Shown: piece after piece, positions 4,810 to 41,297 of the stretch | Layout: each line of letters begins with the position of its first letter | Numbering within the stretch: the first letter of the stretch is position 1 | DNA from: Monocercomonoides exilis PA203 | Lineage: Eukaryota; Protista; Preaxostyla | Assembly (NCBI GenBank): GCA_001643675.2 | Contig: LSRY02000018.1 | Coordinates: 1,054,001-1,118,000 of the forward strand | DNA: 64,000 bases | Direction: 5' to 3' | The notes under the pieces: generated by a model | What the model was told of the DNA's origin: nothing | Database searches by the model: none | What the model saw: only the letters and a program-made list of their open reading frames with translations | Program-made: the position numbers and the translations under genes

Positions 4810-6463
4810 TTAATAAGAACCAGGGTGCCGAGAAGAAAGAAATGGAAGAGCAGCACCCGGAGAAATCTGCCCAATTGCGGAATTTTGCTCGATGTTGACA
4901 GGAGAAGGAGAGAAGCTTGAGGCGTTCTGATACCTTCCTTGGTACTCTTCAGAGGTGCTTGTGGAGTTTGAGCTATGTGAAGGATCATGAGAATTTGAGG
5001 CGAGTGAATAAGAAGGATAACTGGCACCATTTGATGATGATGAAGATGAGGAAGAGGAAGAGGAAGAGGAAGAAGAGGAAGAAGATTGAGAAGAAGAAGA
5101 GGAGGAGGAAGAGAACTCAAGTGGCGGAGAAGGCGGAATGAAAGGCGACTGTCCGTAGCCAGAGCCTGCCTGTGAAGACATGCTGCGAGCATTGCCTGCC
5201 AAAAGAGGTGTTTCGATTGGAAGCTGAGTGGAGTCGTTGAATGCGGAAGGAGCGTCGCTGTAATTGCCCAGCTCTTCTTTCTCTGACCGGAATTCTCGGC
5301 GCTTCTTCTTCTTCTTCTTTGTGCGCTCTTTCTTCTTTTTGGCTTTTTTCGCCATCTTCTTTTCGGGCAGGTGTGCTCCTTGCAATCCAAGCAGCACAAA
5401 TGTGAAGAGAAGGGCAACAGGCTGCAGCGACTCAAACACGAAGTAAAACCCAAAATATGCCCAGTAATACTCGCCCCTCAATTGCGAAAAAAAAATTAAT
5501 TGTTTATTTCATTTGAAAATGAAAAAAATAATGCAATTGAAAAAAAGAAGAACTTTAAATTTGTCAAACCATTTGGTATTGTCATTTTCAATATCAATGA
5601 TTAAAAGATTAAGTTTGTTTTGAAGAACATTACAATTAATGGCAGCAAAGAAGCACCAGCAAAATCTTCCAAAGAAGCAAGCAAATGTAACAATTATCAT
5701 TGAGCACAAAAGCAAAACACGCCAATGTAATTTTGACAGTTTTGAAGAAGATGAAAGCAAAACATATACAAGTCGACCGCCATAAAAGCCTATTGAAAAA
5801 ACGATTGCTCCGTATGCAACAGTATTAAACTCTTGACTTGTTATATCAAAATTATCAGAATTCTCATTTGTTAAAAACTAAATTTCATATTTATGAATGA
5901 AAAAGTTTTGCATAAAGGTTCAATCGTGAATTTTCCAATTAAAGTATTATAAATGCTGCAAACATATACTATCGGCTCCACTATTACCATGAGACAGGTT
6001 ATCAATACAAGAACAACAACAAATATCACTTTCGATAAGACAATCCATTTTTTTGAAGATTGGGTTGAAGAAACAGCATTCCCGATCCAAAGTGATAAAA
6101 ACTGCCATGCCATGAATAACATAAGCCTTGGAAGCTGTTGTGAAAAAATGTTGAACACAACATAATCTCGAAATGGAATTGGCACAAGCATAAAAAATGT
6201 TCTCATAAATGAAAACAAGGCAAGAAACATTAAAAAAAGTTTCTTTACAACATTTTTCTTTGGTCCAGTTTTCTTGATTGTGTCAATTAGCTGTTGGGTT
6301 GAAAATAGCAAACAAAAGAAAAAAACAATAAAAAGCAAATAAAGAGGGAAGGCCCCTTGCCCAAATAACACTTCAACAATAACAAATTAAATGTACAGTG
6401 AAAATGCTTTTGCAAACGTGGGCAATATGCAGAATTTGTCGTTTGAAAATTTTGAAGGGGCAT
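4810..6463 (-). CDS. THH1/TOM1/GPR137-like 7-transmembrane protein, multi-exon, Lys- and Ser-rich C-tail
   Basis: ATG at 6463 and GT-AG introns join ORF pieces 5871-6371, 5509-5760 and 4810-5481. About 7 hydrophobic segments, with 'FSFMRTFF', 'QLPRLMLF' and 'FVFESLQP' resembling the TOM1/GPR137 pattern. Family call is from motif memory. Confidence 0.6.
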
Positions 6464-6653
6464 TTTTTTATCCCCAAAAATAAAAAATAAGTTATGGGTC
6501 ACAAAATATTTATGATATTTACAGTTTAAATGAAATTATTGCTGATCAGTCCAAAAAATATGTTGATCAAACATTCGATTGTGTGTTATCTTTCGAATCT
6601 TGATGACAAAAATCTACTGATTTTTATTTTCAGAATTAGCATAACTCCATTTA

Positions 6654-7053
6654 CACAATTTATTATTCGAAATTAACAAACTTATTATTCGAAATTGGTA
6701 AATGTGTTATTCAAAATTGGTAAACTTCTTATTCAAAATAAATTAAATTGAGTATTTTTATAAAAAAAATTTATTGTGAAAAATTGGTTTTTGGCTAAGT
6801 ATCGGAAAGAGATAAAAATATTTTATTTTTTCATTATTCGTTAAAAGGATGAGTAATTGAACCTCTAATATGGTTATTTGTCAATAAACATGAAATTTTT
6901 TGATAATTCTGAAGAAAATCATCTTCATAGGAATCTTTGATATTAAGAATGATTTCACCTCACATTGTTAGATTGCACATTATTCAATCAAAGTGTAAAA
7001 TTTTCTTCAATACAAAATGCAGAAAACGAAGAAATTTTATAATAGAATAAATT
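6654..7053. repeat. Dispersed repeat / TE left end, family X copy A (TA|CAC start, four 22-bp subterminal units)
   Basis: TTATTC(G/A)AAAT units recur at a 22-bp period (C at 6668, 6690, 6712, 6734). The following sequence (tattgtgaaaaattggtttttggct...aaaaggatga...ttgaacctctaat) matches ~34312-34540. Confidence 0.65.
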
Positions 7054-9593: not shown

Positions 9594-12500
9594 TCATTCA
9601 AATGTGCTGTACCCACTCACAAGACTTCCACTTTGTGCACTTCCACTTTCTCTTTTGCCTCTGTCTGTTGTTTCCTCCAGCCCAATTGCGTCAGACACTG
9701 TCAGGACAGCACAGTCAGCCGGAAAATGACTGATGAATGCCCGCTTCAAGTCTGTGAGTGTTGGCCTGGCGTGCCGGTCCATTGACAGACAAGCGATGGC
9801 TGCTTTCACTCCATCTGGCGAGCCTGCCCTCGCAACATCTGGTCTCTCCCCATTCGCTATCTTCTGTCCCGCCACCTCTGCTGGATACTCCCCAAACGGG
9901 ATCTCCAGCGTCAGGCACTCCAACAGCATCATCCCTATCGAAAACACAACAGACTTCTTCGTTGCCCCCATCTTCCTGTTCATCAGCAATTCTGGTGCCA
10001 TCCACCTCAAGCACTCTTTCTTGTAATCATCCTCATCCTCAAATGCTGATGAGGGTAGAGAATCCTCCTCGTCATCATCACTTGCAGAAGTCACAACTGT
10101 TGATGATGAGATGGAGGATGAATCAGAATCATCAGATGAAATGAAATCAGAGTGCATCACAATGCAGATCACCATATGCTCAGAGAACAGCACAATATGG
10201 GGACTCAAATTGGCCAATGATTGAAGCTTGTTTTCCATTTCATCAAATGAGTGAAGAGCGAGATTAGCCACCCAGAACAGGATCTGAGCAGAAGTCACCT
10301 CCCTCTCCTTCAAGCTCCCAATTGCCATTTCTTTCTTCTCATTTCTTCCATGCAATAACATAAATAGTGAATCTCTCAAATCCACAATCAGTTTCTCATG
10401 TGGTGATGAACAGGCCATTGCATCTACCAGATTCGACATTGAAGAGGTTGTTGGACACATATCCTCCATTCGAACAAATGTCGAATCTGAATCCGTTGTT
10501 GAAGTGGATGAAATGGATGGCGATGGCGTTCGCTTCCTTATCTCTTCTTCTTCTTCTTTCTCCAATGCCCATTCTGGGATTTTGTCTGAGTCTCTTCCAA
10601 GGATATATTCAGTGGAGCCACTCTCACTCAGCAAATGCTCTGATGATTCCGAATGCCCCAAGCTTTTCGTATCATATATTCTCTTCTTTATCCTCTCGTC
10701 ATTTTTCTTCTCTGCCTCCCTCTCCGCTCTCCTCCACTGCTCTTCTGGCGACATCTCCATTGTCACCATCTCAAATGCTTTTGGATCTTTTTTCACTGTA
10801 TCATTCACAATCTCTCTCAGGTCTTTCGCTTCATTCTTTGCCATTCTCCATCGAACAGCCAGAACAATTGAAACAATCAAAGCTATCAGAAACAACACAG
10901 CAAATATCACAATCACAATCAATGCCCATGATGATTTTACATCTTTTCCACTTTCAACAAGTTTTTCATCTCCATTTGCTTTTGTCTCTGTTCGGTTCTT
11001 CAGAACATGCCTTGCAGTCGACGAACGGGAATCACCGTTTCCAAACAGAATGCACACAGAAACTTCTGCTTCGGCTGGTGCAGAGCAGATCATTGCTTTC
11101 TCAATCCAATAATGTGCTTCCGTCTCTGAAACAATTGCTTCCTCTTCCAGTTCATATGTTTCCAGAGATTCTGTGCTCCCAACAGCAGAAACAACACGCA
11201 CGCTCAGATTGCACGGGAGAAGCAGCATCCCGCCCAGAATCAGCTTCATTTCTTTTCCGCTCTCTTCCATATTCACTGTCTCCAACCGAGGGATGAACAG
11301 TGCCGATGCCCGTTCTGCTGGAATCCCCATCAGCTCGCATCCACCATCCATAATCCACAGCGATGTGCTCGGCTGCATCCCATCCCCTCCCTTCAGGCTC
11401 TGAACATCCACCATCCCATTTCCACTGCACAGCACATTCCGCCGCATCGAAGGGTACTTTGCCATTGATGGGTTGTTGTTGATGAATTCTCCTTTCACAA
11501 TCGTCACGCTCCCCCCACACATCGACAGCCCTCCACACGACACATTCGCAATCGTTGTGTCTCTCATCATCACCAATGAGTCTATGCAATCCACCAACGA
11601 TCCACTCCACTCGCACACACCTCCATCCCATTCCACCCCTTTCTCCATCCTTTGTGTGTCTTCCAGTGCAAACAAGCATGCACCCATCACCACATGATTT
11701 GCTCCACAGATGCCAACATCCTTTCCTCTCTCTGCCTCCGATGTGCATCCAGTGCACGTGCAGTTCACCAATTCCAGCCCCTCTGATGCACCGCTCTCCC
11801 AACAAATCACCGATGGAGAGCTTGTCTCTCTGCTGATGTTCTCGAAGCGGCTCAGCGATATCCCGCAAATGGATGAGACTTCTGAGTCTTCATTCTCATT
11901 TCCTCCAGTCCACACATGGCTTATCACTGCACCCTCCACCAACTTTGCTCTTTTCACTTCCACCTCTTTCACAGACACATCCCCGCTCAAAGCCCCAATC
12001 TGGACAAGCGACTTCGCGCACTCAATATCCTTCAGCACCACTTCTGTTGCCATCAGCGAGCCACACTTCCCAATTTCAATCAACACGTTTTCGCAGCTGA
12101 TCCCTCCAATCGAGCATCCCCACATCTTCATCCCACTCTCTCCGCCGCGCTCCCCGCTTCCGACGCTAAACAGCACAAATGGAACTCTCCCAACACCTGC
12201 CTCGCCTTCGCTGCTCACACCAATGCTCCTCAGCTCAGCTGTTCCTGATGCCACCTCCATGAACATTTTGTGCGAAGACACAAACGAACCAGAAAAGACA
12301 AACACCAGCTGCTCAAGCTCCACCTCTCCCACACTCTCCACCACACAATCCTTCGTCTGCTTCATCCCAGACCTCACATGCACCTCTGCTTGCTCTTTCC
12401 ACTTCGAATGCACTCCCACTTCTGCCAGCTCAATTTCGCTTTCAATCTCGCTTTCCCCATCCACAACCAGCTTGCTCTCATATATCTTCGTCATGTGGCC

Positions 12501-15500
12501 CAGCCCATACCCGATCGAAGCACACGGAAGTGCCCGGCTCCCACACTTCTTTGTGTCCAGCCCAGCTCCTGCCCCGCTGCCTGACACAAATATCGTGTCT
12601 GCCTGGTACGTCATAATGAACTCCAGCAGGTTCACCGGCTCAAGCGCATGCTCGCATTCATCCATCCCGTAGATTGCGTTGATTTGGTTGTACACCTCGC
12701 TGCTCAGCACCAGCTTGAACTGCGTCTCATTTATCTGCGATCCGATGTCGTGGCACTCGATGAACATGTCTCGCCCCACATGCGCCGTGTTCGATTCAAA
12801 CTCGATCCCCGAAAACATCATCTCCACGTCTCCTTCAACTGTGCTCCTCACATACATCCCTCCTCCTTTCCCATTCCTCGTCGAGCAGCTGCACTGCCGC
12901 ACCTCCGACTTCCTCACCCCAATCCTCCCTCCTTCCTCCACACACATCATCATCATCCCCCCTTTCTCGCTCTCCGACGACACACACACCTCAAACACAC
13001 ACCCCACTATCTCCACATCCACACACCTCGACGTCCCGCACTCCATCACACTCGCTCCTTCCCCATTCCGCTTGATCCCTTCCAATGTGCTCCCATTCAC
13101 AACCACTCCCGACCTCTCCCCCGAACATTCTGCCCCTTCCTCGCAATCAATCTCAAACACTGCCCCTCCCCACAGGCTCACAGACGATCCATGCATCTTC
13201 TCCACTTTGCACTCCCTCACTCCCCGAATCACAAACACACTTCTCTCGCAAAACACATCCTTCACTCTCACCTCTTCTGCCTCCATCTCTCCTCCCATGC
13301 ACACCACAAATGAATACCTCCCCGGCATGTTCGCGCTGCTCTCCGATACAAACTCACATTTCGCCAACCCCAGCTTTCCCCCTTCGTTCACAATAATCGC
13401 CCCCTTTCTGCTCTCAAACCCTTTCCCCACCTCAATTCCAATCTCCCTTATCCCCAGCCTTCCCCGGTTTTCCATCCATGCCTCGCTCTCTCCTCCTGCC
13501 CCTCCGTTCTCCATCAACAGAATCGCTTTCTTCCCTGTCTCAACCTCACCATCACCCCCCTCAATTCCAAAACCCGACAAGTCGTATCCTTCCCTCATCA
13601 CACTCGCATCCTCCACCACAACCTTCTTCTCCCCATCATCCTCTTCTCCTTCTCCTCCAATGTGCATGAACCCTCCATAAAATGTCTTGCACGGCTCCTT
13701 CTCGCTTCCACACCGCCTCACATCCAGCCCCCTTGTCGACACATGCACTGTGCTGCTCTCATAACTCATCACAAACATCAGCAGGTCCACAACCCCCACC
13801 ATCTCATCTTCCCCACAAAACGATTTCTCGTCCCATCCCATTCCTTCCAACAACACATTCAGACTCTCTTCATTCACACTTCCATTCAGGTCTGCTGCCA
13901 CCACAAACATGTTCCTCCCCATCCATGCCTCATTCCCTCCAAATATCATGTTCTTCACTCCAAATGGCAATTCCCTCAGCGCTTCCGTGCACATCAAATA
14001 CATCCCTCCTCCTTTCCCACTCCTCCTCTCACACACACACTTCTTCACACTCGTTCCATTCACCTCCATTCTCCCTTCCCCTTTCACACATATCCCTATC
14101 CCGCCTCCCCTCAACGACCCTCCGGCAAACACATCCTCCACCTTGCACCCATTCACAACCACTTCTCCAAACACACTTCCTCTCAGCACCACCCCTTCTC
14201 CTCCAACCTCCGACTTCAGCCCCACAAACGAGCATCCATTCACAGCCATCCTGTTCTCCCCGTTCCATCTCCCACCTCCCTTGCTCCCTGTCCCAACCAC
14301 TTCCACAACACTGCTGTCTCCAATACTCACATCCTCAAACTGCGTGTTTTCAATCAATCCGCTCCCTGCCACTGACACCTTCAACACAGGAGCCAACGTC
14401 CAAATCCCTTTCACCACGCACCCTCTCACTGTCAACTCCCCACATTCCACAACCACAAAGCTGAACCCCAGCCACACCCCTATTTCCTCCTCAACAATGC
14501 TCTCTGACAGCTCCACCCCTCCCACATACGAGTACGAATAGATCACACACCCTTTGCTCCCAGGCAGCTGCGCCCCCACCAAAAACTTTATCTTCTCAAC
14601 CTTCAATCCTTCCATGTTCCGAACAACTCCTTCTCCTCCTCCTCCTGCCTCTTCATCCAAACCCCCTCCAAATTTCAGTGTTCCCATCTTCTCTTCTCCA
14701 CTCGCTCCGCCTGCCGATCGGATCACAAACCGCGACAAGTCATAGCTCCTCCTCACCTCGCACTCCCCGTCAATAATCATTTCCTTCTTCTCGCTGCTCG
14801 CCTCTGTGTTCATGAATCCTCTCCAGAATGTTGCACAGGGGTACGCTGTGCTCCCGCACCCAACCATGTCAAACCCCTTCCTCCCCACACAAACACTCCT
14901 GCTCACATATTGCAGAACAAACATCATCAAGTCCACTGCTTCTCCAAAAAAGTGCTCCCTGTCTCTCCCTCTCATCTCCACTTCTCCTCCCCCTTCTCCT
15001 TCTCCACACACCACATTCACTATCGACTCTGCCTTCACTGTCCTGTTCAGTGACTCACATTCCACATACACATCCCTCCCCTCTCTCGCTCTGTTCCTCC
15101 CAAACACAACATCCCTCAACAACAACTCCCCCTCCTTCCTCCCATTCAGCCTCATCCATATTCCTCCTCCTTTCCCTTCCTCCCCCTCTGCCACACACCC
15201 CTTCACCTCTATTCCTTCGATCATCACCTCTTCTTCTTCTTCTTCTTTTTCATTCTCTTTCTCCTCCTCCTCCTCCTCCTCGCTTGCCTCCCACCTCAGC
15301 CAGCCCCCCTTTCCCTTTGATGACACACACCCATCCACCATGCTCCCATTCCCAATCCACCCTCTCTTCACTCCCCTCAGCACAACAACCGCCTCTCCAC
15401 AACTGCAGTTTCCCATCTCTACCCCACTCACATTCACTCTCTCACACTTCTCACACACAATCACCGAACTGCCCTCTCCATCCACCCCGCCAATAAATGC

Positions 15501-18500
15501 CCCTTCAACACTCACTTCTCCTCCTTCCACATCAAACACCCCACATCCTGCTCCAAGCCTGATGTCCTCTATCCTGATTCCGCTCATCTCCAATGACCCT
15601 CCACTTCCCCTTCCTATCCACATCCCCATTCCTGTTGTCTCTGCTCCTCCTCCTGCTCCTGCTCCTTCCTCTCCTGCCTCAAATGAGCAGTTCACAATCG
15701 AACACTCCCCGGCCCTCACCTCTATCACCTCCCCATGTGTCGATGTGCATGGAAGGCAAAACCTCAGTCTGCTCAGCATCAGCCCCACCATCCCTGCCTC
15801 TCCTGTCAACTCCAAATGCCCCTCCCTTCCAACCGCCACCAAAGCCCTTGTCTCCTTCTTCCCCTGAATCGTCAGCCATCCTCCCTTTCCCTTCACCGCC
15901 CCATCCACCCTTCCATTCCCCACAATCTGCACTATCCTTTGCCCTTCCCCCATTTGCTTCACCCCATACACCACATCCAAGCACGGCCGCACCTCCTCCC
16001 CACAATCCTTTGTGTTGCTCCCCTCCCCTCCATTCACAAACACAATCGCTTCGTCTGCCGGAAACAGATACGGCAGCATCGACAGGCTCCGCCCGCTCGC
16101 CTCATCATACACCCACAGCTGCTTCTCTTCTCCATCCGACTCCCTCGCCGACCCACTCCACCACTTCTCGTTCACCAGTGCTCGTGCATCCGCACACACA
16201 ACATACGCGTTCTTCCCCTCATACGCCTCGTTCTCCCCAAACTCCACCATCTTCACACTGTATTTCACATTCCTCGATCCCAGCACCAGATACATCCCGC
16301 CCCCTGCCCATCCCCACTGTTCACCTTGTTCCCCCAAACCCTGTTCGAATCAAACAAAAACTCTCCTCCTTCCTCAACCTCCACGTATCCCCCTCCTCCC
16401 TTTCCGCTCCCTTCCCGGCACTCCACTTCAATCAGCCGACAATCCTTCACAACCACCTTCTCCAACCCCCCAACGACCCCTTCCATCACCCCTCCTTTCC
16501 CACTCTCTCGAGCCACCCCTTCAAACGTGTTGTTCCCCATTTCCATGCTCACCCCTCTCTCAAATCTCACTGCCCCATGCTCCCCAAACACACATGACCC
16601 AACTGTTGAGTTGCCCCACTTCGCCGTTGCCCCTCCCCCAAGCTCCACCAATCCTCCCCTCCCTCCTCCCGTTATGTTCTCCAACACCAGCAAGTCAATC
16701 ACCCCTTTTGCTCCATCGCCCTTCACAACAACCACAACAACACCAGTCTCTGTCAAAATGTTCACATCCTTCACTGTCACATTCCGCAGCGTCATCAGCC
16801 CTGCTGTGCACTCTGCCACACAATATGTCGCAGCCCCTCCCTCTGCTTCCATCTCCCACTTCTCCACACACAGCTCCCCTCCGCTGCAGCAAAACAAGCT
16901 TCTCCGAGCTGGTGCAAACGAGCTCGGCACTCCCATTTTCATCCCGCCAAATCGCCCCACCCCTCCTCTCGTTCCAAACACACACTCTCCACCCCTTCCA
17001 CATCCCTCGCCACTCCAACACCCGCCCCTTCAACTGCCCCTTCAATATCCACCTCCTGCCTTTCTGCCACTATCTCTGCCCTTATCATGTATGACTCCAC
17101 AAGTCGGATGTGCACCTTCCCCACCCCAAACCGCGCCCCGATCGCAAACCCAACTGACCCGCACGGATACCTCTCAAACCCACACACCCTGTAGTCCACC
17201 CCTTCTTCCCCCACATACCCCGGCTCTTCCCATTCACTCACACACACCCAAAGCGGAACATCTAGCTCCTCCCCTTTGTCGAATCCAACATGCTCATTGC
17301 TTGTCCCTGCTGCCTCCACCCCTCCCACTTTCACACTCTCCGCTGTCACAACCCTCCACAGCTCCTCTGCTTCCACAAACATCTTTGCCCCTCTTTCTGC
17401 CATGTTGTCTTCGAATGTCAGCCCTTCCACCAAATAGTCTCTTCCCACTTCACCTTCCCCAATAAACTCCATCGCCACCCCTCCTCCACACCCTCCTCTG
17501 TTTTCCTTCTTCAATGCCCTGCATCCCACAAACTTCGTCACCACCCCGCTCTGCCCAACCCTCACCTTCCCGCTTCCCTCAACTCCAATCTTCAATCCCC
17601 CTCCACACCCCCCTTCCGATATGCTGTCTCTCACAACATTCCCCTTCCACTCAAACACACTCCCTTCCCCAACCTCCACATACGCTGCCCCGCCATCCCC
17701 GTCTCCCACCTTCCACAGACTCATGTTCGAGTTCAAGATCTCCACACTCTTTCCTCCCTTCCCACACACTGCCCTCCCACCATCCACTCTTCCCACCCCT
17801 GTCAGCTCCGATCCTTGCACGCTCATCGACCCTCCTCCCTCCACATGCACAAGCCCTCCTCCACATGTGGTGCTGCACCCACTCACTGTGCACGATGACA
17901 CTGTCACCCATCCTTCATCCCTCGCTTCACAGAACGGACACTCGCCGAAACAGATCCCGCTCATCTCCACCTGAGACAGAATCACACTCCCTCCTGTCGC
18001 CTCAACAATCCTGAACCCCACCATGCTCCCCTCCTTCGCAACAACAACCACACTCCTCATCGTCAGCGCCCCTCCAATGCTCTTCACAAAACTTCTTCTC
18101 CCGTTCAGCCCGCAAGGCACCTGAATCCCCACATTCCCAATTGTGGTCGTCGCCTTGTTCACCACCAGCCCGTCCTGCTTCTTTTCCCCGCTTCCCCCCA
18201 CATCCACCACACACCCTGCCCCTTTCCCTTCCACAACAACAGTCCCTTCCCCAATCACATGCTCCCGCTCCAGACTCACACTCATCTCAATCGTGCTCCG
18301 AAGCCCCAGAATGCTCCCCCGCTTCTCCATCGCATAGTCCAGTGTTCTGCACCCAGCTCCTTCGTATCCACATCGCTCAAAATCCCAGCTCTCTGCTCCC
18401 CCGACTGCAATCACCGACGGCTCTGGCTGCAGATACAGCACAAGCGGGATCCCGTGCTCACATCCATTCTCATACCCCATCGCCCCTGCCCGGTCTGACA

Positions 18501-21500
18501 TATTCGTGATCCATCCCATCCTTTCGCTGTCCACCACCTCCGACAGCTTTTCTACCTCCATGAATATGTCTCTCCCCGCCTTTCCTGCACTGCACCCGCT
18601 GAACTTCACTGTCTTCACATATATCTCTCTGCTCCCTTCCTCCATCTTCACCATCATCCCACCTCCAAACCCTCCTCTTCCCCCTCCAACTCCCCCTCCA
18701 ACTCCCCCTCCCTCATTTCTCATCCCCGCACTGCACAATGAAAACTCCGTGCTCAGCCGCCTCCCAACTTCCACTGTTCCGCCATCCGACACAACCACCT
18801 CCACTCCCCCGCCATTCCCCTCCATGCACACCCCATTCAATGTTCCCCCATCAATACTTATTTTCTGCCCAAGCCCCACAACCCCTGACACAATCCCCCC
18901 ATCTCCCCCTCCCACAACAATCCCTCTCAATGTGCTGTTCCACAGCTCAACACTCCCTGCTCCCTCACTTTTCAGAAACCGGCTCCTCTTTCCTCCTCCT
19001 CCTCCTCCTCCTTCCACACTCGAATTCCTCACGCTGACAATGCATCCTCCTCCACTCACCTCCACAAACGATCTCGACTCCTCATATCCTGCAACAACAA
19101 ACACTTCCAACTCGCTCAGCGTCACTTTTCCCCCACTCGCCCTCACAAAACTGAACCCCACTCCATTTTCGCACCCATCCCCTCGCACTGTGCATTTCGC
19201 CATCTCCACCTCCCCACCATCTCCGCTCACACTGGCCACACTCATCCCTTCTTCTGCCAGCTCTGCCTCCAGCACCAGCCCCAGCTCCTCCATCCTCCCA
19301 ACCCCTCCGATCGTCACAACCCCAGCTGCTCCTGACGTGTTCCCCACAACCACCACTTCTGCCCTTTCTCCTCCTCCTCCTCCTCCTCCTCCATTTCTCC
19401 CTCCTCCATTCAACACATACTCCTCTCCTCCACCAAACAAAACATTCTCCTCCATCCGGTACTCCCCAACCACCACCACCTCCTTCCTCCCTCCACCCTG
19501 CTGCTCCATCGAATACCACACGCTCCGACACGGATACTCCATGAATCCACACGCTGACACATCATGCCCTCCGCTCCCCACCACCACCCTCTCCTCCCTC
19601 TCCATCACATAGAATACCAGCGGAATCATCACATCCGGCCACTTCTCATCAACCCCCACACAACTCTCCACACTCCCATTGCTCCATTCCTTCACATGCA
19701 CAAATCTCTTCACATTCACACACCCTTTCAGATCCCCCGATTCCACAAACAAATCCTTCCCTTCCTCCCCTCTGTTCTCGACAAATCCCACATTCTTCAC
19801 ACACAGATCCACATCCTCATCCTCCACCCGCAAATACACCCCTCCTCCTCTCCCTCCCCTCCCTCCCCTTTCACCACCCCCACTCCCTGCCTGGCACCCC
19901 ACAAACTCCACAGTGTTTTCTGTCGATGTGCTGTTTCCCACCCCCACCTTCCCTCCTTTCTTCACACACACATATATTCCTCCCCCATCTCCCTCCCTGC
20001 ACTCACACCCCCGCACTGTGCAGTTGTCAAACTCAAACACCTCTCCCTCCCCAACAACCCTCTCCACCACGCTTCCGTTCCCTTCTGTCTTCACAACCCC
20101 GCTCACCTCCGATCCCTCCATCACAACCCTCGCCCTTCCACTCATCCCAAAAACACTCCCTCCCATCCTGAATCTCATCCCCACAATCAACGAGCTCACA
20201 ATCCGTGTCTCTCCACCCCCAAGCACAAACACTGCTCTTTCCATCCCACAATCCTCCCCATCGCAAACACACCCCACAACACTCTCGTCCACCCTCAGCT
20301 CCCCGTCTCCACTCATCACAAACACTGACACACTCACCCACCCTGCCATCTTCACACTCACATTCATCCACCCTATCTTCAGCCTTCCTGCCCCAATCCC
20401 AAACAGCCTCCCCCCCTCTCCATTCCACATCATCGCATTTCTCGCTTCTCTGCTGTGTTCTGTCGATTCAATCCCAACCACTTTCCCCCAATCTCCATTC
20501 CCGATTCATATGTGATTTCGCTCCCCACTTTCACAACCCACGAGTGCTCCTCTCCCGAGTGGTCCAGCGCCCCTTTCACTGTTTTGCATGGCTGGTCTGC
20601 TCTCATCCCACATGTCCACTCTTCATCATCTCCAGAGACCACATCCACAAATCGAGTGTCAAACAACGGAATCCATTCATTCTGTGTCCCTTTCAGAGCA
20701 TGAAATAATCTGTTTGACAAAGTGGTGGAAAAGCATTCAACGAATTTGTCTCCCAAAAACAATCCTGATCCATCTTGCACATACACATCATTTCCATTGA
20801 AATTCGCTCCACATGTATTGTTGTGGAAAAACAAAATGACACTTTTGAATCAGAGTGATTGTTTCCTGGAATGATAACAAAATAAAGAGATCCGGCTTCG
20901 TGGGGGCAACATGAATTCTTACAATACAGTTCTGTGATTGTGAAGTGTGATTTTGTTTGTTCATATCCAATACAACCTTCATTTCCACCTCTCACTGTGC
21001 TGTTCATAAAAGAACAATTTGAAATGGAATCCGGTGTATTTAAATATTGATAACCACTTAATGCTCTCAAATAAATAGATCCACCAGCAGAATATTGAGA
21101 ATTATTGTTGAAAACCGAGTTTTCAATCAAGGATCCATCTAAAACCTCAAGAAAATGCAAACATCCTCCATATCCAATTGAAGTATTTTCCCCCCCTGAA
21201 ATGTTGTTGAAAACACTCGAATTCACTCTCGTTGAAAGCATTCTTTCCCCACTGATAGCCCCTCCATTGTTCCTTGCTGAACACTTTTGGAATTGACATC
21301 TTGTGGCTGTGAGAGCAGATTCAATCCCTGTGATTGAAATTGCTCCTCCATATGCAGCAGTGCATTTGATAAATGTGTCATCTTCGAAGAATCCCGAGCA
21401 ATTCAAAGACTGGTGCCCTTCAACATCGGAATATGTTTGATTCGCATTCCTGACTCTGTTGATGTTTGTGTATGTGTTGTTGATCGAGTTCAAATGAGAC

Positions 21501-22192
21501 ATAGCACAGCAATCTGGGTTGACGATGCTCCCATAAAACACATCTTCCATCGAAACGAAACAGCAGCCAACCATTGTTGTTTGGCAGCCATCCCTTCCAG
21601 CATTTCTGTGTCCTCCCACTTTCCTTTCCACAGAAATGTTGCTGAACACTGTCTCACACATCCAGATGCTGTTTGTTCCATATGCATCTATGAACGGCCC
21701 CTCTGAAACGGAGAGTGACAAAAAATTCGAGGATTTCAAAAGAACTGAGCCACTTGCCCCATCTTTTCTGCCAATCTGCCTGTTCGAAAAAAGCGAATTC
21801 ACACCCATGCCCTGCTTCCCTGATCCAACTGAAATATTGCTCATTTCCACAACACCAGCAACACTCACAAAAAACGAACTTCCCCTCGGACTATCTGCTT
21901 CCAGCTCACAGTCAGATATCTTCATTTCAGACAGAACATCCACAGTTTCCACCACTTTTCCACTCCCTTTCAACAAACACGACCGGGAAAGAACAAGGGA
22001 TGAATTCACCAGATGAATGCATGCCCTCACTTGGCATTGTTCATTGAACTTATTTTTTGGTGTGATGGTGTTGTTTTGAAGCTCACTTGTCACAAAATGT
22101 CTTTCTATTTGATTTTCTTCTTTTATGTTCTTTAACCCTGACGCAAAAACATCAACACAGCAGAAAAGTTGGAGAAGAAAAAACAACACCAT
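9594..22192 (-). CDS. Giant receptor-like protein (~4,200 codons): signal peptide, repeated beta-helix (pectin-lyase-like) modules, TM helix, degenerate TKL-type kinase domain; four frameshifts as assembled
   Basis: ORFs 20693-22192, 20430-20834, 16939-20481, 16265-16981 and 9594-16337 overlap in series and join by small indels. N-terminal MVLFFLLQLFCCVDVFA; GGG(I/M)Y and F..N.A..G.D motifs; eight C-G-x(4-5)-(P/G)C motifs; TM WALIVIVIFAVLFLIALIVSIVLAV (~10855-10930); C-terminal RWMAPE, VFSIG, PF and RP kinase subdomains. Confidence 0.8.
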
Positions 22193-31699: not shown

Positions 31700-32643
31700 T
31701 TGTTCTGCAAGGAAAATAATTGTTCACGGCTTCAATCAAAAAAGGCTAGACAAATACAAACAAAAATTTTTTTGTTAAAAGTTACGGTTCACTATATTAT
31801 CGTTTAGTTTTTTTATGTTTTATTGGAAATTTTTGTGTTTTCTTTGATGTTCAATAAAAACGCTTCAATTCTTTTTATTATACAATATTTCAAGCGATAT
31901 TTTGAGCAAAGCAATTTTTGATACGCAAATATTAATTTCCAAATGTTATCATTGAAATTTGTTTTTCGTTTGTTTCATCAATGAAAAATCTCATAAACGT
32001 TTTGTTTCAGATTTTTTTTTGATATTATTATTTCAACAATAAATTATCTAACTTATTTTAGGATTTATTTAATGATAATCTTCAATAATTACACCTTTAA
32101 CATCATTTTATTTATCATCAGAAACATTGTCTTTTTTTTTTTTCTCTCTCTCTCTCTCTCTCTTTTTCATTAAATAAATGAAACAAATATTCACATCAAG
32201 TTGTTATTTTTCTTTAAAGTTTGAGATTACAACAAAATATCAAACAAGAAATATTTCTTAATCATATCATCTTTTACGCTTCGATTTGTAATATGATATA
32301 ATTTTCGGTAAGATGGCTTTATCAAGAAGTGAAAGTTTTCTATTTAAAATGTGTTTTGGCAAGAGGCTACTTTAGGGGTACCAAATTTTTTCGTTAAATC
32401 CAAGAATCCACAGCTAAAAATAATACAATGTTAAGATATTGTAAATACATTAGGTAAACAATAACTTGTTGATCAGAATTGAAAATGATTGAATGGTTTT
32501 TTATTCAAATCTTAAGTTTTAAGAGGCTTTTTTCAAACTTCATAAAAATACTTTAATTGAGTTATTTTCAACCCAAACAATTGCAAATAACAATAATATT
32601 CAATTTAAAAACCTGAAAATGTCTTTTTATTGTTATTTAATTT

Positions 32644-33440
32644 CACCAAAAATAATTCTGATTCGAAAAAAAAAATTCAATTTCGTAATTAATAATTCAA
32701 AATCGAAAATTAATAATTCAAATTCGTAATTAATAATTCGATTTCGAAAAAGAAAAATTCAATTTCGAAAATGATTATTTCAATTTCGAAATTCATTATT
32801 AACTGAAATTTTAAATTTTTCTCGAGAATGGATTTCAGAAAAGGAAAAGTTATTTTTTTGACCAATCAAATTTTATTACGCATAGAAAACTGTTTTTTTT
32901 ATTGCAACAATCAATAAAAAAATTTTTAAATTTTTTTCATTTTCGAAAATCATCACTCAAATAATATTAATCTTATAAAAATTCATTCTATTGAATAACC
33001 TAATAAAATTGAAAAAATTTAATCACGATTATAGTATTATTTCTTCACAATAATGTGATTGTTTCATTTTCAAAATTTTGAATAATATCGGTTTTAAACA
33101 TGAAAATGTATTTCTTTCCTTTTCAAATTAACTTCAATCAATAAATCTTCATTCAGAATGAAAGAAAATTTTTAATGAAAATGCATCATTTTTCAAATAT
33201 TGATAAACAAAATTTGCTGATGAGATAATAATTAAAAGAATTTAAAACCCCAAACACAAGTTATTCATTCCACAAATTAAAAAAATTCACGTTTCGAAAT
33301 TGAATTATTCTTTTTCGAAATCGAATTATTAATTTCCGAATTCGAATTATTAATTACGAATTTGAATTATTAATTTTCGAATTTGAAATATTAATTACGA
33401 AATTGAATTATTTTTTTTCGAATTTGAAATATTTTTGGTG
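32644..33440. mobile_element. Foldback-like non-autonomous element, CACC termini with inverted arrays of ~21-bp repeats (copy 1)
   Basis: Starts caccaaaaataattc and ends gaaatatttttggtg|ta. ~32650-32790 and ~33290-33435 are inverted tandem arrays of (t/a)tcg(t/a)aattaataattcaa-like units around a non-coding AT-rich core. Confidence 0.82.
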
Positions 33441-33980
33441 TAATTTTTCAAAAAAATCATTTAAAATTTCAATTAGGGGACAGTTGTGTTTGAGAACGAA
33501 AACCCTAAAAAAGAAAAATGATAAATAAAGCATATAGTCTACACCAAAGATTGTTAATGATAGTTCACTCGAAAACATTTAGCCTTTTCATAAATCTTGT
33601 TTTTAATTTTTTAGGAACACTTAAAGTGGCCTTATGCCTGTGTTTTTATTACAAAAATTATATTTTTTTCTCGTTGTTTTCATATTGTAACAAATAGGAG
33701 CAATTGATATGAGAGAAAATATTTAAATCAAATTCAATTCTTCAATTGATTTTTGGGAAATGTTTTTTTTTTTTTTGAATAAAAATTTTGTATAAACTCA
33801 TTTAAATTTGACTTGTTTAATTCATCTGAAATATCATCTCTTTAATTGCTATTTCCTTATGTATATGAAAAAATTTCGAGATAATAATATATGTTTCATC
33901 CAATTCGATTTCGCATACGGCATTTATTATTCAAAATTTGTGAACTTTTTATTCAGAATTATGAAAATTGAGTATTTAAG

Positions 33981-34306: not shown

Positions 34307-35379
34307 ATATGTATTGTGAAAATTTGGTTTTTGGCTGAGCATCGGAAAGCGATCCAAATATCATATTCAGTCAAAAATAAAAAAAAGGATGAAACATTGA
34401 ACCTCTAATGTTATTATTTATCGAAATAGAAAAAAAATCCACATTATCAAAAAAAACCTTCATTGAAATCAGATATCTTTTGGATAAAATCACCTTCCAT
34501 TATCTTATTATGCAAAATTCAATGAATAAAAACTGTTTGCATCTCCTTCACACACCGAAAAACGACATAGGTGTAACTGCGTCCCTTTTTCAATTCTTGT
34601 TTTTAGACATTAATTTTGTGATGTTTGAAATGCAAAATTTATTTAAAAACTTTTGTATAGACCGGTTTTTCGCAAAAATTTTTGTTTCTCGTGAAAAAAC
34701 TGTTTTTAAAATGACCCATAAATATGAGTATATTTTCAAATAATTTATTAAAATAAGATAATTAAGAAATAAAAAGTAGATGAAATGTTATTAATTATAA
34801 TATTGTCCTATTTTAATAATAAAAATTTGGGCATATGTGTAAATTGTACCACTTTCAATTTGCATTTTTAAAAATTTTGAATATCATAGCATTAATCTAC
34901 ATTATTTAACGAAGCGATTCAAGGAGGTAAATTTCGAAATTCGACCAAAAATTTTTTCTCTGAAATTCAAAATTTCCTACACCCATAATTTTTTAATTTT
35001 GATCATATTTTATTTAAATTTCTTTTTCTTACTTAGCATAGTTCGGATGAATTTGGCGATACTATGGAACAAAATAAAATATTATGTTTAATGTTTGTCT
35101 TGATGAATAACTGTCTATATTGTTTTTTATGTTGCTTATTTTTAAAAATTGATGTTTATGTGATATTTTAATTATAATAAAATTCAATGATAAAGCCGCA
35201 TGTCCAACTCTGATGAACTGATGGAATTGCACAAATATTATGTTTGAAATGATTATAAAATTGTTCATAAACTTTTTTTATTCTGTATTATTTTGTCTAT
35301 TTAATTGAACTTTATGAAAATGAAAACTTTCAAAGAAGAAAGTACTAAAATGTTTGAGTGCTTATTAGCCTCATGCTCT

Positions 35380-36050
35380 ATTTCAGGTTCAAGTGGAAGA
35401 GGAATGTATTACTGAAGTGTTTCAGATGGATTCAAAATGAAGTGCATGCAGTTTATTTCTTGTTGAGAAGCATCATATGGCGGGGGATTGGATTTTGTTC
35501 CAAATCAATCAGAAGCTCCAAGCACAACTATTATTATTATTTCTTCTTCTTTCACGATTGCAGTTGCAACGCTTCCACTCCATATGGCCACGATGTGTAT
35601 TTTCAAGACAATAATAATCTCTTTTCATCGGCTAACCCGTTCTATGAATCGTACACAACGAATAGTGATGATAAGAGAGTGTGCCGCCAATATTATAATG
35701 GAAGCAGTTATGTGTATCAGCACACAGAAAAGTAGGATTGGCTGAAGGAGGGGATGAAGGATCGGTTTGTTGGGGTGGGTGGGAATGACGCAAGCAATCT
35801 GTGTGGAATGAGCGAGTCAGCGCCTTGCAAGACAGTGGGGCATGCAGTGGGGGAGAGCATGGCGCAGCTTTGCTCGACAATCACAGTGCTGGGTGGGAGG
35901 CATGTGAGCGAAGGGGAGACAATCAGTGTTGGTGAAAAGAAGATTTCTGTTGTTGGGAGAGGGAAGATAGTGAGTGTGATTGGGGTGAATTCTCTTTCTT
36001 CGACTTCGCCTACGCTCTTCAGTGTGTCGAGTGGACAGTTGAAGTCGAAA
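35380..36050 (+). pseudogene. Captured fragment of the beta-helix surface-receptor family
   Basis: FFFHDCSCNASTPYGHDVYFQD...PFYESYTT...(TAG)DWLKEGMKDRFVGVGGNDASNLCGMSESAPCKTVGHAV parallels FFHNNTCGANFNGNDVYVQD...FVECFST...EWIPLFDTRFVDVVSGDDEEWTCGMRADQPCKTVKGAL at ~20570-20830. It has an in-frame TAG and ends abruptly. Confidence 0.82.
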
Positions 36051-36059
36051 TATTTTTGC

Positions 36060-38000
36060 TGGCTGAAATAACGGCAAATTCCAGGTCTTTAGGAAGTCGT
36101 CCAATATTCTTATCCGTATTTGTGCTGGCACTGCCACAGCTTCCAAACATCGCCGTTGAAGTGAAAAAAATTCGATTCTGCTGTAGCTCCTCGTCTCCAA
36201 ACTGCACTCCTCATTATCTCCATTTTCATTGCAACCATCACCTTCCCCGCTGTTTGGGCCTCCCCAGGCACTTGGATCATCGAAAAATTCTTCTGTTGAG
36301 AAACATTCCCAGCTGCGCCCTGTTGAGAAATAAAAAACGAAAAAAAAGAACATAAAAAAGGTGTAACACATTAACAGCTCACTCGTGAGGCAAACAAAAT
36401 GGCACACCTCCACCAGTATGGCTGAAAAGATAACATTCTGAAAGGAAACAACGCCACCCAACGGCACCAAGCTGCCCCACAAACCCTGTCACACAACGCT
36501 GCCACATTATTCAACAGACGCAGAGCATAGAAAGAGCATCATAAACAAATTCAATGTGCGGATTCAGCCTATGGACTGATTTACCTCAGTCCGATTTCAC
36601 AGACATCCCAGAGGCTCAGCAGTCATAGCCTCTCTTAGATCTTGTTCAGTTTTATAGATGATTCCGTGTGCAATTACTGCTCCATGCTGCTGCACCTTTT
36701 TCAGCTATATTAACTATTTTTTATAAAAATAATCAATATGTGCCACGCATTTGTTGAACTTTTTATTTTCATTTATTTGCAAAAATACTTCAAAAATTGC
36801 GAAAAGTTGATATTTAATTTTTCTATTGGCATTGGTTATCCCAAATTCATGATCAGAACCTTTGCAAAAGCGTTTCGCTGGCTTTGCAATTTTCTTAAGG
36901 TCACTCGCAACTTCTTCTCCCGCGTTTTTCGCTCATTCTTCAGACACAATGCAGAAACCTGGTTGATGATTCGACAGCATGGTCAAAGAAATAAAGAAAT
37001 AACATAAACGAACAGTTAAATGTAACAAGAAAAAATCAACAGCCATATAACAAAATTACAAAAAATTTAGAAGATATAATCTGGGATAAATGAAATCAAT
37101 GACTTAGATATTAGAACAGACTTAAGAAGTAACCTCGTCACTTTTCTGCTTTGCATATATCAAATGCCTCTTTGTCTAAAACTCTTCCTTTCCTCCTCTT
37201 AGTCCTTCTTCTCTTCTCATACAGTCAATCCCCTTTATTTCTATGTTCTTTATCTTTATCTCCATCTTTTTTCCTCGTATTTCCAACAGCAAACTGCCCT
37301 CCGGCCTCTCTCATTAAAATCATCAACACATTCCGCTGCTGCTCGACGGAGCATCAGCTCATCAATCATCACTTCTTCTCTTCCAACTCATCAAGTGAGG
37401 ATTTATCTTGCCTCGACTTCTCTTAATGCAACCTAACACTCGTCCTTCTCTCTCTTTTTTTTTTTTGCTTCTCTCTTTTCTTCCACTGCTTTCTATTTTG
37501 TCTCTGCTCAGAAACAAACAGCTGCTTTCACTTCCATTGAAGGAAACAGAAATACCAAAGTCGTTCCATCCATGCAAACAAGCATGGATTTGCTGCACAA
37601 ATACTCATTTGAACCTTTTATTTGTCCTCCGAATCTTCTCCTCTCCTCTGTTCTTCTTCTTCTTCCACTTTACGAAGCATTTAATTAATCTTCAGACTAA
37701 CAGCCAGACTCCTCCGTGCCTTGCAAACTTTTTGCAACAAGGTGATCCTTTCTCCTCAGCCCCAGTTCGTCACTTATTCAAATTCTAGTTTTGAAACTTT
37801 TCTCATTGCAATTTCCGAAAGACACCTTGGAAAAGATGAACAAATGTGTATTTACTTTTCAATATCTTGGATTTTTGCTTTGCTTTTGTCAAATCCTTTA
37901 ATTCTTTTCATTTCTTCCTCTCTTATTTTCTGCTTCGCATTTGTCATTTGGAAAACAGCGTTTGTCCATAATTCATTTGAATCCTTTGCTCTTATGGAAC
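36060..38000 (-). pseudogene. Further decayed, intron-containing gene fragments inside the TIR element (donor genes unidentified)
   Basis: Minus-strand coding-like, purine-rich stretches (~36060-36695 and ~37140-38000) with scattered stops and apparent splice acceptors (e.g. aaaaag|GTGCAGCAGCAT near 36695). Confidence 0.5.
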
Positions 38001-38495
38001 ATTAACTAAAATTCAAAATTTAAAAAATAATATTCTCATTATTACAGAAATATTTATGTATATTAAGCACATTCACACTTTATATAAATATTGTTATTAA
38101 TTGTGCAAGATAAACAACATTGAAATTAAGTGCGCATCAGAGTAAAATACAAATACTGAATCAGTCAAAAAACAGAGTTATAAAATAAATAACAATTGTA
38201 ATTTCGATAACTTTACCATTTTACACAATATTTTATCTTGTTCCATATCATCGCCAAATTCATCCGAACTATGCTAAGTAAGAAAAAGAAATTTAAATAA
38301 AATATGATCAAAATTAAAAAATTATGGGTGTAGGAAATTTTGAATTTCAGAGAAAAAATTTTTGGTCGAATTTCGAAATTTACCTCCTTGAATCGCTTCG
38401 TTAAATAATGTAGATTAATGCTATGATATTCAAAATTTTTAAAAATGCAAATTGAAAGTGGTACAATTTACACCTATGCCTATTTCTGTTCATTA

Positions 38496-39241
38496 CACCA
38501 AAAATTATTCAACATCGAAAAACATTAATTCAAAATCGAAAAAGTTTAAAAAAACATCGAAAAACTTTAATTCAACATCGAAAAACTTTAATTCAAAATC
38601 GAAAAAGTTTAATTCAAGATCGAAAAAGAAGTTAATTAGTTCAGAATTTCAATTAAAGTCAAAACCTAGGAAATTTTATTGACGCAAATGTTTATAATTG
38701 CAAATGTTTATTTATTGGAAATGTTTTTCTTTCGTTTTTAACAACTGGTTTCTATGATAAAGACTGATATCAATCGATTCTTTTCTCATTTTGAATATTG
38801 AAAAAGATATATTTTCTCAGTTTCCAATGCAATAAATGAAAAATAAAACATTTTATTTTCAGTAAATGAAAAGAATTTTTTCATTTTTGTGCACAAAACA
38901 AGATCATGAACTATCCTATCACTTTTATTTTTTGCTCAAATTCCTTATAATCTCCTGAATACATGTAAAGAGTTTAAATAAAATTCAGTTTTATCCTATT
39001 TCCAGTATTTCACACAATCAAACACCAAAAAAACATCAAAAAATGTTTTTCTGATTGACATTGACAAATTTCTCAGATCAATAACTGAAAGAAAAGAAAC
39101 TGACATGAGTATTAATTTTTAAATTGTTTTTCAAATTTTGGATGATGCAGCATTTTCGACGTTGAATAAAATATATTCAATTTGGAATTATAGTTTTTCA
39201 ATCTTGAATTAAACTTTTTCGATGTTGAATAATTTTTGGTG
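38496..39241. mobile_element. Foldback-like non-autonomous element, CACC termini, TA TSD (copy 2, divergent subfamily)
   Basis: Perfect 27-bp TIR caccaaaaattattcaacatcgaaaaa, TA on both flanks, and a 21-bp tandem array (tcgaaaaactttaattcaa(c/a)a) at ~38505-38630. Confidence 0.88.
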
Positions 39242-39261
39242 TATATTTTTAAAAATAATTA

Positions 39262-41297
39262 GGGTGATTTATAAAACCGAACTTTTTTTTAATTTTGGTT
39301 TGAAATAAAAAAAAATTTTTTTCAAGCAATCATGTTTTAATTTTGAAAATTGAAATGATCAATAATAAACATAATCAACAAGTTCTCTTTTTACAATTTT
39401 TCTGTAATTTTTCTGCTTTGATTCATCATCCAAAACATCATCATTCAAAATGTGGGATTTATTAAATCTTCTTTTTTGGGGCTTTTCAGCTGCGAAAAGA
39501 ATTTTTTCTTCTTTTTCATCACTATTATCTTTTCTTTTCTTATCTTCTTTCATTTTCTTTTCTTTTTTCCATTCTTCAAGCAATTTTTGTTCAGTTATAA
39601 TTTTTCCATAAAAATCAAACCTGTGTGTTCTCTTTTTCAGTGTTACCGAAGGTTCCTTTGGAAGTGTTGATAGTACTGAATGCCACTCGTTTGAAAGCAC
39701 GCCGCTTTTCTTGAACGAAGAAACAACAGTTGCAGGAAGTAATGCTGTCTGAAGAGCTTGTGGAAGAACGTTGGAAATGGCCTCACGTCGAAGAGAAATG
39801 GTAGAATCTGGAGGCACAGAGTAAAGAGAGTTGATGCATTTTTTGAGGGCAGCAAACACACCACGATCAGGAGGTTGTGTGATGTGTGAACTGTGTGGAA
39901 TAAAAGTGACGACGTCAATGTTGTTGTCAGCAAATTTCTGCCATATGTCAGGCTGAGCCCGAGAAGAGTGAGAATCCAAAAGCAGAAAACATCTCTCATT
40001 GGTTCTCATTAATATTTTCCTTCTTTCGATGATTCCAGTTAATAAAACCTCTTCTGCGTATCTTTGAAATATGCTTTCCGTCATCCATCCATCGTTGTTA
40101 TCCCAAACATCAATGAATGCGCTCAGAAGAACTCGCATTTCCTTTGGTAATTTGTGGCATGGCCACAACACAATGCTTTTGAGAGAATATCCATCTGCAG
40201 CAGCTGTTACAACCAAAGTGGCATTTGGCATGTTTGTGGGTGTTGTATGAAATCCAGCTGGAACTACTGTGGGGTGAATCACAAGAGTTTTGAAGGAATC
40301 CGATAAGCGGAGTGAAGATTCATCGGTGTTATAAATTAAAGAAGGTGAATAATGATGTGAATTGTGAAGATTTTGCAGAAGCTCGTAGAAAGGAAGAAGA
40401 GCTTGTTGATTGGATACCGAAAGACGTTGGATATCCACATTTCTGGGAATGGACGCTTTAAGCTCAGAATTCCTTTTTGCAAATAGATATGGATTTGATT
40501 TGGACACACTGGTGTTTTCATCAAAATCAGTTTCTGATCATCTTTTTTTGTCGGAAAGGACGGATTCCATCTGAAAAATATTTGTTATTAAAAACGAAAG
40601 ATAAATAAATGTGTTATCGAACTAATTCTCTTGTTCTCTTTGCATTTTTACTTGTTCCGGATAAACTTTCGATTTTAATAACTCCAACAATAGTATTTTT
40701 ATCATCTTTGTTAAATAGTTCTGGCCTGCCAGGTTTTGCAACAGCTCTGCCGCTTTCAATTGCTGAAACTGCTCTTATTATTGCTGAACGAGAGAACTCT
40801 TTGGTATTTATTGCGTCAACGATTCTGACATGTCCATCAACAACTATGCGCGCCATGCGTTCCAAACGATTTTCTATTTGCCTATAACCAAATGACATCA
40901 TTTGATTTCTAATGTTTAGCAATCCTTGTTCTGTTCTATTTTTCACAACACTCATTTCAAAAAATTTTTGGTAATGATCTTTTTTTATTTTTAAAAAAAA
41001 TTTTTTTTGTAATGAAAAAAAATTAAAAAAAATATTTTCGATTAAATTCTAACTTAGTCAGCCCCGTTGCTATTACCTAATCTCCTCAGGGGAGGCACTA
41101 ATCAGAGATGGAGGAGCTAACCCCCCCATTTCCCCATCCATCAGAGATTAGGTATAGTAATTTTATCTAGAATTTCAGTCATTGATTTTTCCTTATATAC
41201 TGAAAACAATATAAAAAATATAAAAAGTGGGAAAAATCAACTTATTATTAAAAAAAATGTCCGGGTTTTTAAAAAAGTTCGTGTTAATAAATCACCC
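39262..41297 (-). mobile_element. pogo-superfamily (DD35D) DNA transposon, full-length, TA TSD
   Basis: TIRs gggtgatttataaaac-cgaactttttt / gggtgatttattaacacgaactttttt, TA on both sides, enclosing the transposase. Confidence 0.88.
39359..40955 (-). pseudogene. DDE_1 (CENP-B/pogo) transposase with one intron and one in-frame TGA
   Basis: YNTDES, DGWMT, LLLDSHSS and PHSSHITQPPDRGVF, with 35 residues between the 2nd and 3rd Asp. Exon 1 40955-40623, 52-nt GT-AG intron 40622-40571, TGA at 40540-40538. Confidence 0.85.

Follow-up and report, generated by a model that had tools for sequence, protein, structure and literature searches.

A probable gene-carrying Merlin transposon, old and chimeric, in the genome of Monocercomonoides exilis

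How does a fragment of a giant receptor gene come to lie between long terminal inverted repeats (TIRs), and to which group of mobile DNA does such a structure belong? The question is raised by positions 34830–38480 of a 64,000-nucleotide (nt) stretch from the oxymonad Monocercomonoides exilis PA203 (GenBank assembly GCA_001643675.2, contig LSRY02000018.1, positions 1,054,001–1,118,000 of the forward strand), hereafter the window. An earlier note on this DNA had described the locus as a Pack-type element, either Mutator-like or Merlin, that had gathered pieces of several genes. The answer reached here is held with considerable confidence: the 3.65-kb locus is a non-autonomous Merlin DNA transposon of considerable age that bears receptor-family cargo and survives as a chimeric copy.

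The element and its family

The two arms of the element (34830–35093 and 38217–38480) are inverted repeats of 264 nt that are 97% complementary, enclose 3123 nt and constitute the longest inverted repeat within the window. When they are aligned, the outer ∼231 nt (34830–35060) contain one mismatch, T versus G at 34836, and six further mismatches fall in the inner 33 nt; the ends of the element read GGCATA(T/G)G. The 231-bp repeats with one differing base reported in the earlier note are therefore real, as the outer portion of longer arms. The note had also stated that no transposase is enclosed, and this stands: the internal open reading frames (ORFs) are all short, Pfam scans of them gave no match of any kind, and tblastn with the 513-amino-acid (aa) Merlin transposase of the family found no remnant in the element or in any of its 4-kb sisters. 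The locus is laid out as follows; L-numbers denote sister loci fetched from the genome searched, which comprises 82.3 Mb in 101 contigs (C-numbers).

34822–34829, unstranded: left flank at the expected position of a target-site duplication (TSD), AAAATTTG, which matches the right flank at 4 of 8 positions
34830–35093, plus strand: left TIR, whose end reads GGCATATGTG... and which is 74–86% identical to sister arms
34830–34953, plus strand: terminal ∼124 nt, common to transposase-encoding elements and likely to be a transposase-binding end
35094–35337, plus strand: sub-terminal spacer, 61–66% identical to the sub-TIR region of L031–L043 (sensitive blastn)
35350–36044, plus strand: cargo, a pseudogene fragment of a receptor-kinase N-terminal module (aa ∼270–494 of ∼520)
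36045–36621, unstranded: ∼0.5-kb segment, found next to the truncated module's end at other loci too (75–84% identity, at least 25 loci)
36672–38216, unstranded: pyrimidine-rich, non-coding-like, family-specific interior, collinear with sisters L047, L048 and L051
38217–38480, minus strand: right TIR, from the arm alignment; its outer junction (38444–38520) is bridged by a same-sample contig
38481–38488, unstranded: right flank at the expected TSD position, TATTTCTG, abutting a ∼750-bp foldback repeat

The arms are not confined to this locus. When the left arm was used to search the genome, 40 matches were scored, mostly as inverted pairs 3.3–6.9 kb apart. For a strict 28-nt terminus the count is 54 (28 in forward and 26 in reverse orientation; reversed control, 0), with ∼22 pairs, and a looser 22-nt motif marks 144 termini genome-wide (control, 0), mostly in pairs 2.4–11.5 kb apart: the genome-wide search for paired TIRs that the earlier note had proposed is thus answered by many inverted pairs. 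The termini fall into three subtypes, namely a, which includes the window copy, b, with ∼25 uniform elements of 2.4 kb, and c, with elements of 3.7–6.1 kb; about 70 elements are present in the genome across the three. Homology between copies ends exactly at GGCATAGG on both sides. The note had suggested looking for TSDs of 8–11 bp. TSDs of 8 bp are a property of the family, being perfect and in register in 12 of the 21 elements examined; two further elements have TSDs of 8/8 and 7/8 once eroded ends are allowed for, and others match at 6–7 of 8 positions. TIR lengths range from 207 to 541 nt, and some sisters, at 533–541 nt, are longer than the 24–462 bp published for Merlin (PMC8101967). Within an element the arms are mostly 97–100% identical over 207–541 nt and between elements they differ by 14–26% (L031–L051), a pattern that suggests either arm-to-arm homogenization or recent movement of diverged old lineages.

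Two observations on individual sisters may be added. The elements of subtype b are very uniform and their terminus, GGCATAGGTCTAAATTG..., differs by one base (e.g. C1:1628196–1630641, C8:588473–590875 and C27:192763–195162); this subfamily, several members of which contain module matches, may be the most recently active. The left flank of L031 (positions 1–551; C35:706641–707191) is a reverse-transcriptase-like ORF, and L031 is therefore inserted in a retroelement.

The superfamily is indicated by an autonomous sister, L045 (C40:833747–840620), which measures 6874 bp, has 208-nt arms and is flanked by the TSD CACAAGAA. Positions 743–2284 of this locus hold a stop-free ORF of 513 aa, a predicted transposase with the domain DDE_Tnp_IS1595 (PF12762, E 4.1e-15; bit score 56.5, curated cut-off 27), in which motifs around the three presumed catalytic residues are readable. 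Related transposase copies with the same ends reside on C7 and C74 (87–89% protein identity), so that the transposase-bearing copy sought by the earlier note exists and is of Merlin type. Homology between autonomous and non-autonomous elements is confined, in all copies, to the terminal ∼126 nt (83–97% identity): the ends of the window copy match the C40 autonomous copy at 88.5–89.3% over 122 nt and the C7 autonomous copy at 86.5–87.3% over 126 nt. Judged from this conservation, the terminal ∼126 nt are likely to be the part bound by the transposase.

Merlin elements are characterized by GG ends, TSDs of 8–9 bp, TIRs of 24–462 bp and a transposase with the DDE_Tnp_IS1595 domain (PMC8101967, citing Feschotte 2004), and Monocercomonoides sp. 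PA203 harbours >100 Merlin copies in at least seven families, all with 8-bp TSDs (PMC8101967). The family described here agrees with this portrait in the putative DDE_Tnp_IS1595 transposase of its autonomous member and in the 8-bp TSDs of the family as a whole, and the window copy agrees in its 5′-GG TIRs with 264-nt arms and in the ends that it has in common with the transposase-encoding copies on C40 and C7; a TSD of 8 or 9 bp is missing at the window copy itself, where 4 of 8 positions match.

Some further features concern transposase genes in and around these loci. The N-terminal part of the L045 transposase (743–1200) displays a CxxC...CxxC motif, for which Pfam gives weak zinc-ribbon or RING-like hints (E 0.005–0.5); in the literature, Merlin transposases are described as lacking the zinc-finger domain of IS1595. 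At L055 (C37:817000–822500) a distant Merlin transposase fragment (749–1267, minus strand) is found beside an N-terminal module ORF (1739–3229) and a segment resembling 36100–36621, a layout suggesting that the receptor module accompanies other Merlin families too. In the window, an intact 382-aa ORF of pogo-like DDE_1 type (39359–40507, minus strand; PF03184, E 1e-13) is situated on the right side of the element at a distance of 880 nt. It was considered as the element's own transposase and rejected, as it is located beyond the TIRs and represents a different family; its relatives are nested in L044 (3044–3766), split by the L051 insertion (2359–2694 and 6438–6815) and present in the flank of L042. 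Two foldback repeats of ∼750–820 bp (38489–39259 and 32637–33457), with arms made of 21-bp tandem units that are 81–90% complementary, resemble miniature inverted-repeat transposable elements; one of them begins 8 nt past the right end of the element.

Receptor cargo and interior

The cargo (35350–36044) aligns in two frames with aa 270–494 of an intact 534-aa sister ORF (tblastn identities of 53% in a 57-aa hit and 76% in a 164-aa hit). It is a 5′-truncated pseudogene with three in-frame stops and one frameshift. The intact ORF, located in L044 (C7:1252050–1253651), encodes a protein with a hydrophobic N-terminus that detects 2279 candidate loci; 81 of these were scored, at 62–72% identity, and many start open frames of 2000–4400 aa (maximum 4411). 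Because of this abundance, and of the position of many loci at the start of long open frames, the cargo is part of a conserved N-terminal module, ∼520 aa long, that characterizes a very large gene family. The earlier note had connected the plus-strand fragment with the first module of the giant receptor gene in the window (9594–22192, minus strand), and the connection is borne out: the cargo matches that gene directly at 48% over 33 aa (E 2e-6), and the L044 ORF provides a bridge, matching its first module (21583–20469) at 25–33% identity (E 8e-16). The giant gene terminates in a PF07714 kinase domain, which ties the module family to the tyrosine-kinase family that overlaps the ‘unclassified repeats’ of the published assembly (PMC8767320). 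No TIRs were found around the giant gene. As the note had also supposed, this neighbour is not the source of a direct copy and the donor lies elsewhere: the best DNA matches to the cargo are 80–84% identical, and no locus in the genome exceeds 84%.

The same sequence recurs throughout the family. All ∼4-kb sisters share the internal region with the window copy at 65–83% identity, all non-autonomous sisters examined hold the same N-terminal module, and the coordinates of the terminus and module searches, read against each other, place the module inside elements of subtypes b and c too. The C40 autonomous copy accommodates, on the strand opposite to the transposase, a receptor-like gene, now split into ORFs of 537, 161 and 808 aa, that ends in a transmembrane stretch and whose repeats match modules of the giant gene in the window; the C7 autonomous copy is collinear with it over 6.6 kb and holds part of the N-terminal module. 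Since cargo of the same kind is found in all three subtypes and transposase-encoding copies also hold a receptor-like gene, the receptor sequence has been carried by this Merlin lineage for a long time and is not a set of varied captures. Different cargo in different TIR pairs, as foreseen in the earlier note, was not encountered: every copy examined, autonomous ones included, carries receptor-family sequence.

Homology to receptor proteins stops near 36045–36050. The note had seen an abrupt join at about 36050, and the stop is real, but it is not peculiar to the element. The segment 36100–36621 follows the same truncated module at at least 25 other loci, mostly on C42 and C80, with 75–84% identity; a similar segment continues from the module in L049 and in L050, of which L050 is flanked by TIRs. 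Where homology ends beside the C42 copy, L049 (C42:120000–129999), a family terminus was looked for and not seen. As the same succession is found at so many loci, including one at which no family terminus was seen, the junction cannot be a mark of this element in particular. The stretch 36045–36621 may be the 3′-terminal part of short-form genes in this family. Genes of this kind also occur in large palindromes, such as L053 (C42:141500–149800), L054 (C53:343500–352800) and L049, with arms of at least 4 kb that are 95–100% identical and carry one short-form module gene each; the search tables contain many such inverted pairs on C42, C53 and C80.

Further to the right, the interior from 36672 to ∼38200 is collinear at 67–69% identity with the TIR-flanked sisters L047 (C9), L048 (C40:559945) and L051 (C46), and at 56–60% with 4-kb sisters. 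In tblastx comparisons between copies, all six frames of 36000–38216 score alike and thus give no coding signal, and the ORFs of this interval have no Pfam match. The longest minus-strand frame retrieved only short copies of itself from the genome, many with stops, and no longer gene; blastx of the interior against all ORFs of the window and of the fetched loci returned nothing else. Because frame signal, Pfam match and parent gene are all missing and the region is collinear with sisters, the sequence comparisons favour reading 36050–38216 as family-internal, apparently non-coding DNA rather than as further captured genes. The two or more unrelated minus-strand gene fragments proposed in the earlier note do not survive these comparisons. 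Positions 36050–36406 have an exact counterpart in a contig of 357 nt whose source is a metatranscriptomic RNA library with the label ‘synthetic metagenome’: this contig could stem from a transcript or from carried-over DNA, and transcription is not proven by it.

Chimerism and competing explanations

The ends and the cargo of the window copy have different relatives. In the cargo tree it is joined at 98/97 support with L051 of subtype c on C46, a 3702-bp element with perfect 207-nt arms and the TSD CGTGAGCA that is inserted in a pogo-like gene; both have the same 5′ truncation of the module. In the TIR tree, by contrast, the two window arms pair with each other at 100/99 and group with L031–L035, and c-type arms are found beyond a long, fully supported branch. 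Approximately unbiased (AU) tests reject a clade of the window copy and L051 for the TIRs (p 1e-5) and, for the cargo, both the group defined by the TIRs (p 8e-5) and one clade that would unite the cargo of every subtype-a element (p 3e-4). As the two trees disagree under the AU tests, the window copy is a chimera: the comparison shows exchange of sequence between elements, the arms belonging to one subfamily and the interior to another. Exchange with host genes is suggested; few host rows enter the cargo tree. That cargo is nearer to host genes than to sister cargo was rejected as proof of repeated capture, since a faster decay of element copies gives the same ranking of identities. Mixed ancestry is visible in other sisters as well. 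L037 (C80:880644–885297) and L041 (C36:882093–886655) possess arms from different TIR clades, 77–79% identical to each other, between perfect 8-bp TSDs; these elements must therefore have transposed as hybrids.

Several points weigh against the view of the locus as a transposed Merlin element with captured cargo. The flanks of the window copy match at only 4 of 8 positions (AAAATTTG versus TATTTCTG) and form no TSD, and its insertion by transposition is something that we infer from the family. The closest relatives are 86% identical in the arms and 84% in the cargo, values that no copy in the genome exceeds, and recent movement is not evident; in view of this and of the missing TSD, the copy is considered old and decayed. 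With regard to the assembly, parts of the stretch are present in nine public runs, of which the four best are from one sample that is probably the source of the assembly. Contigs of those runs match the element without differences over 35031–35576, 36431–38279 and 38444–38520 and thereby extend across the inner edge of each TIR and across the right outer junction. None of the public-run contigs spans the whole element, and these short-read contigs share their sample with the assembly, no spanning long read being available. Finally, the direction of capture is based on ∼2000 host copies against ∼70 elements and on the truncation of the cargo, not on a rooted tree including bona fide host genes.

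How do other explanations fare against this background? The missing TSD, the lack of a spanning contig and the many large palindromes that bear the same module in this genome would all suit an inverted duplication of local origin, or an artefact of assembly, that merely resembles the family ends. Both arms, however, end exactly at the family terminus GGCATAGG and fall inside the family TIR tree, and the contigs that bridge the two inner arm edges and the right outer junction do so without differences, which makes an immobile structure highly improbable. Affiliation with another superfamily verges on the impossible. Long TIRs that start with G recall Mutator-like elements (MULEs), as the earlier note had remarked when it left the choice between MULE and Merlin, and 8-bp TSDs are typical of hAT elements too. 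Yet the only transposase found between family ends is of the IS1595/Merlin type, not of the MuDR type, and no MULE or hAT domain was seen. A MULE or Pack-MULE is excluded in addition by TSDs of 8 bp instead of 9–11 bp; hAT, for which TSD length is the only fit, is also at odds with TIRs of hundreds of nucleotides. Of the two superfamilies named in the note, Merlin is thus the one upheld, by the 8-bp TSDs, the GG ends and the sister with a predicted DDE_Tnp_IS1595 transposase.

The remaining two explanations accept a Merlin element and differ on the origin of its contents. A Pack-type element with three or more pieces that were each captured on their own from different genes (one receptor piece and at least two unrelated ones on the minus strand), varied cargo across the family and active shuffling of receptor modules would agree with the working definition of Pack-TYPE elements (PMC8903248), with a base composition over 36000–38000 that is skewed opposite to that of the cargo, with the exact match of the RNA-library contig and with the exchange of sequence implied by the discordant trees. 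It is nonetheless unlikely, given six equivalent frames and no Pfam family over 36000–38216, a best minus-strand ORF that matches only short copies of itself with nothing more from blastx, an interior that is collinear as a whole with L047, L048 and L051, and the same module in every sister. The flow might also have run the other way, the module being native to the transposon lineage and the short-form genes of C42, C80 and C53, or the family's N-terminus itself, descending from element copies that lost their ends. Transposase-encoding copies already contain a receptor-like gene, the 36045–36621 segment follows the truncated module at at least 25 loci devoid of family TIRs, and L044 cargo groups with L049, a copy without TIRs. 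Against this, host module genes number in the thousands and include intact frames of 2000–4400 aa ending in kinase domains, and the element-borne copies are ∼70 and nearly all truncated or broken; such a reversal is accordingly quite improbable. A Merlin element that took up receptor sequence from the host remains the preferred account.

Known systems and biological meaning

On this account the element would move by cut-and-paste when an IS1595-type Merlin transposase made elsewhere binds its terminal ∼126 nt. The intact 513-aa ORF of C40:833747–840620 is a candidate source of such activity in trans, as predicted from its sequence, and insertion would generate an 8-bp TSD. Capture would have proceeded from host gene to element, and the chimera may have arisen through recombination or template switching between elements.

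Published Merlins, including the PA203 families (PMC8101967), resemble the present family in the 5′-GG ends, a TIR length (264 nt in the window copy) within 24–462 bp, 8-bp TSDs at family level, a sister with a DDE_Tnp_IS1595 transposase and the host species itself. They differ in that the published PA203 elements bear transposases and mostly have TIRs of 23–29 bp, compared with 207–541 nt here; the same publication mentions no non-autonomous or gene-carrying Merlins, whereas the window element is devoid of transposase and holds coding sequence of a host family, and a receptor-like gene is present here even in the autonomous copies.

Pack-TYPE elements are non-autonomous class II elements that hold fragments of coding genes and have been described in plants (PMC8903248). 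The window element has no transposase gene between its TIRs, and part of its interior (35350–36044) is DNA from a host coding gene; as among plant Pack-MULEs and Pack-CACTAs (PMC8903248), a coding-gene fragment lies between TIRs, copies are many and some elements are chimeric (here L037 and L041). Different captured genes and an identifiable parent locus were not found, the cargo coming from one family with a best match of 84%. The Merlin superfamily, the metamonad host, a cargo from a single gene family that is present in autonomous copies too and the absence of an exact parent locus (≤84%) set the element apart from its plant counterparts. Derivatives by internal deletion, such as Ds from Ac, are similar in that only the ends are common with the transposase copy and movement would depend on a transposase in trans, but here the interior is host-like and retains no trace of transposase.

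In plants, MULE, CACTA, hAT, PIF and Mariner elements all provide well-documented cases of non-autonomous DNA transposons that carry genes. For Merlin, and for metamonad protists, no description of gene capture, Pack-TYPE cargo or gene-carrying elements was found in the literature searched; the claim in the earlier note that nothing of this kind was known from oxymonads is accordingly right for the gene cargo and wrong for Merlin itself, which had been published in this species (PMC8101967). The window copy adds one decayed, chimeric member to a gene-carrying branch of Merlin.

A wider role can be put forward tentatively, as a possibility that falls short of being probable. The Merlins of M. 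exilis would habitually carry the N-terminal module of the receptor-kinase family, which has about 2000 members, and swap it again and again, both among themselves and with paralogues in the host, through gene conversion or template switching in gap repair. In this way they would disperse, truncate and recombine receptor 5′ ends, seed short-form genes and account for part of the kinase-overlapping ‘unclassified repeats’. In the published assembly a third of the genome consists of ‘unclassified repeats’ that overlap kinases (PMC8767320), and Merlin cargo may explain such repeats. Some 70 Merlins thus hold pieces of the largest gene family in an organism studied for its missing mitochondria, and a cargo whose history differs from that of the ends provides a testable link from mobile DNA to the expansion and mosaicism of the receptor family.

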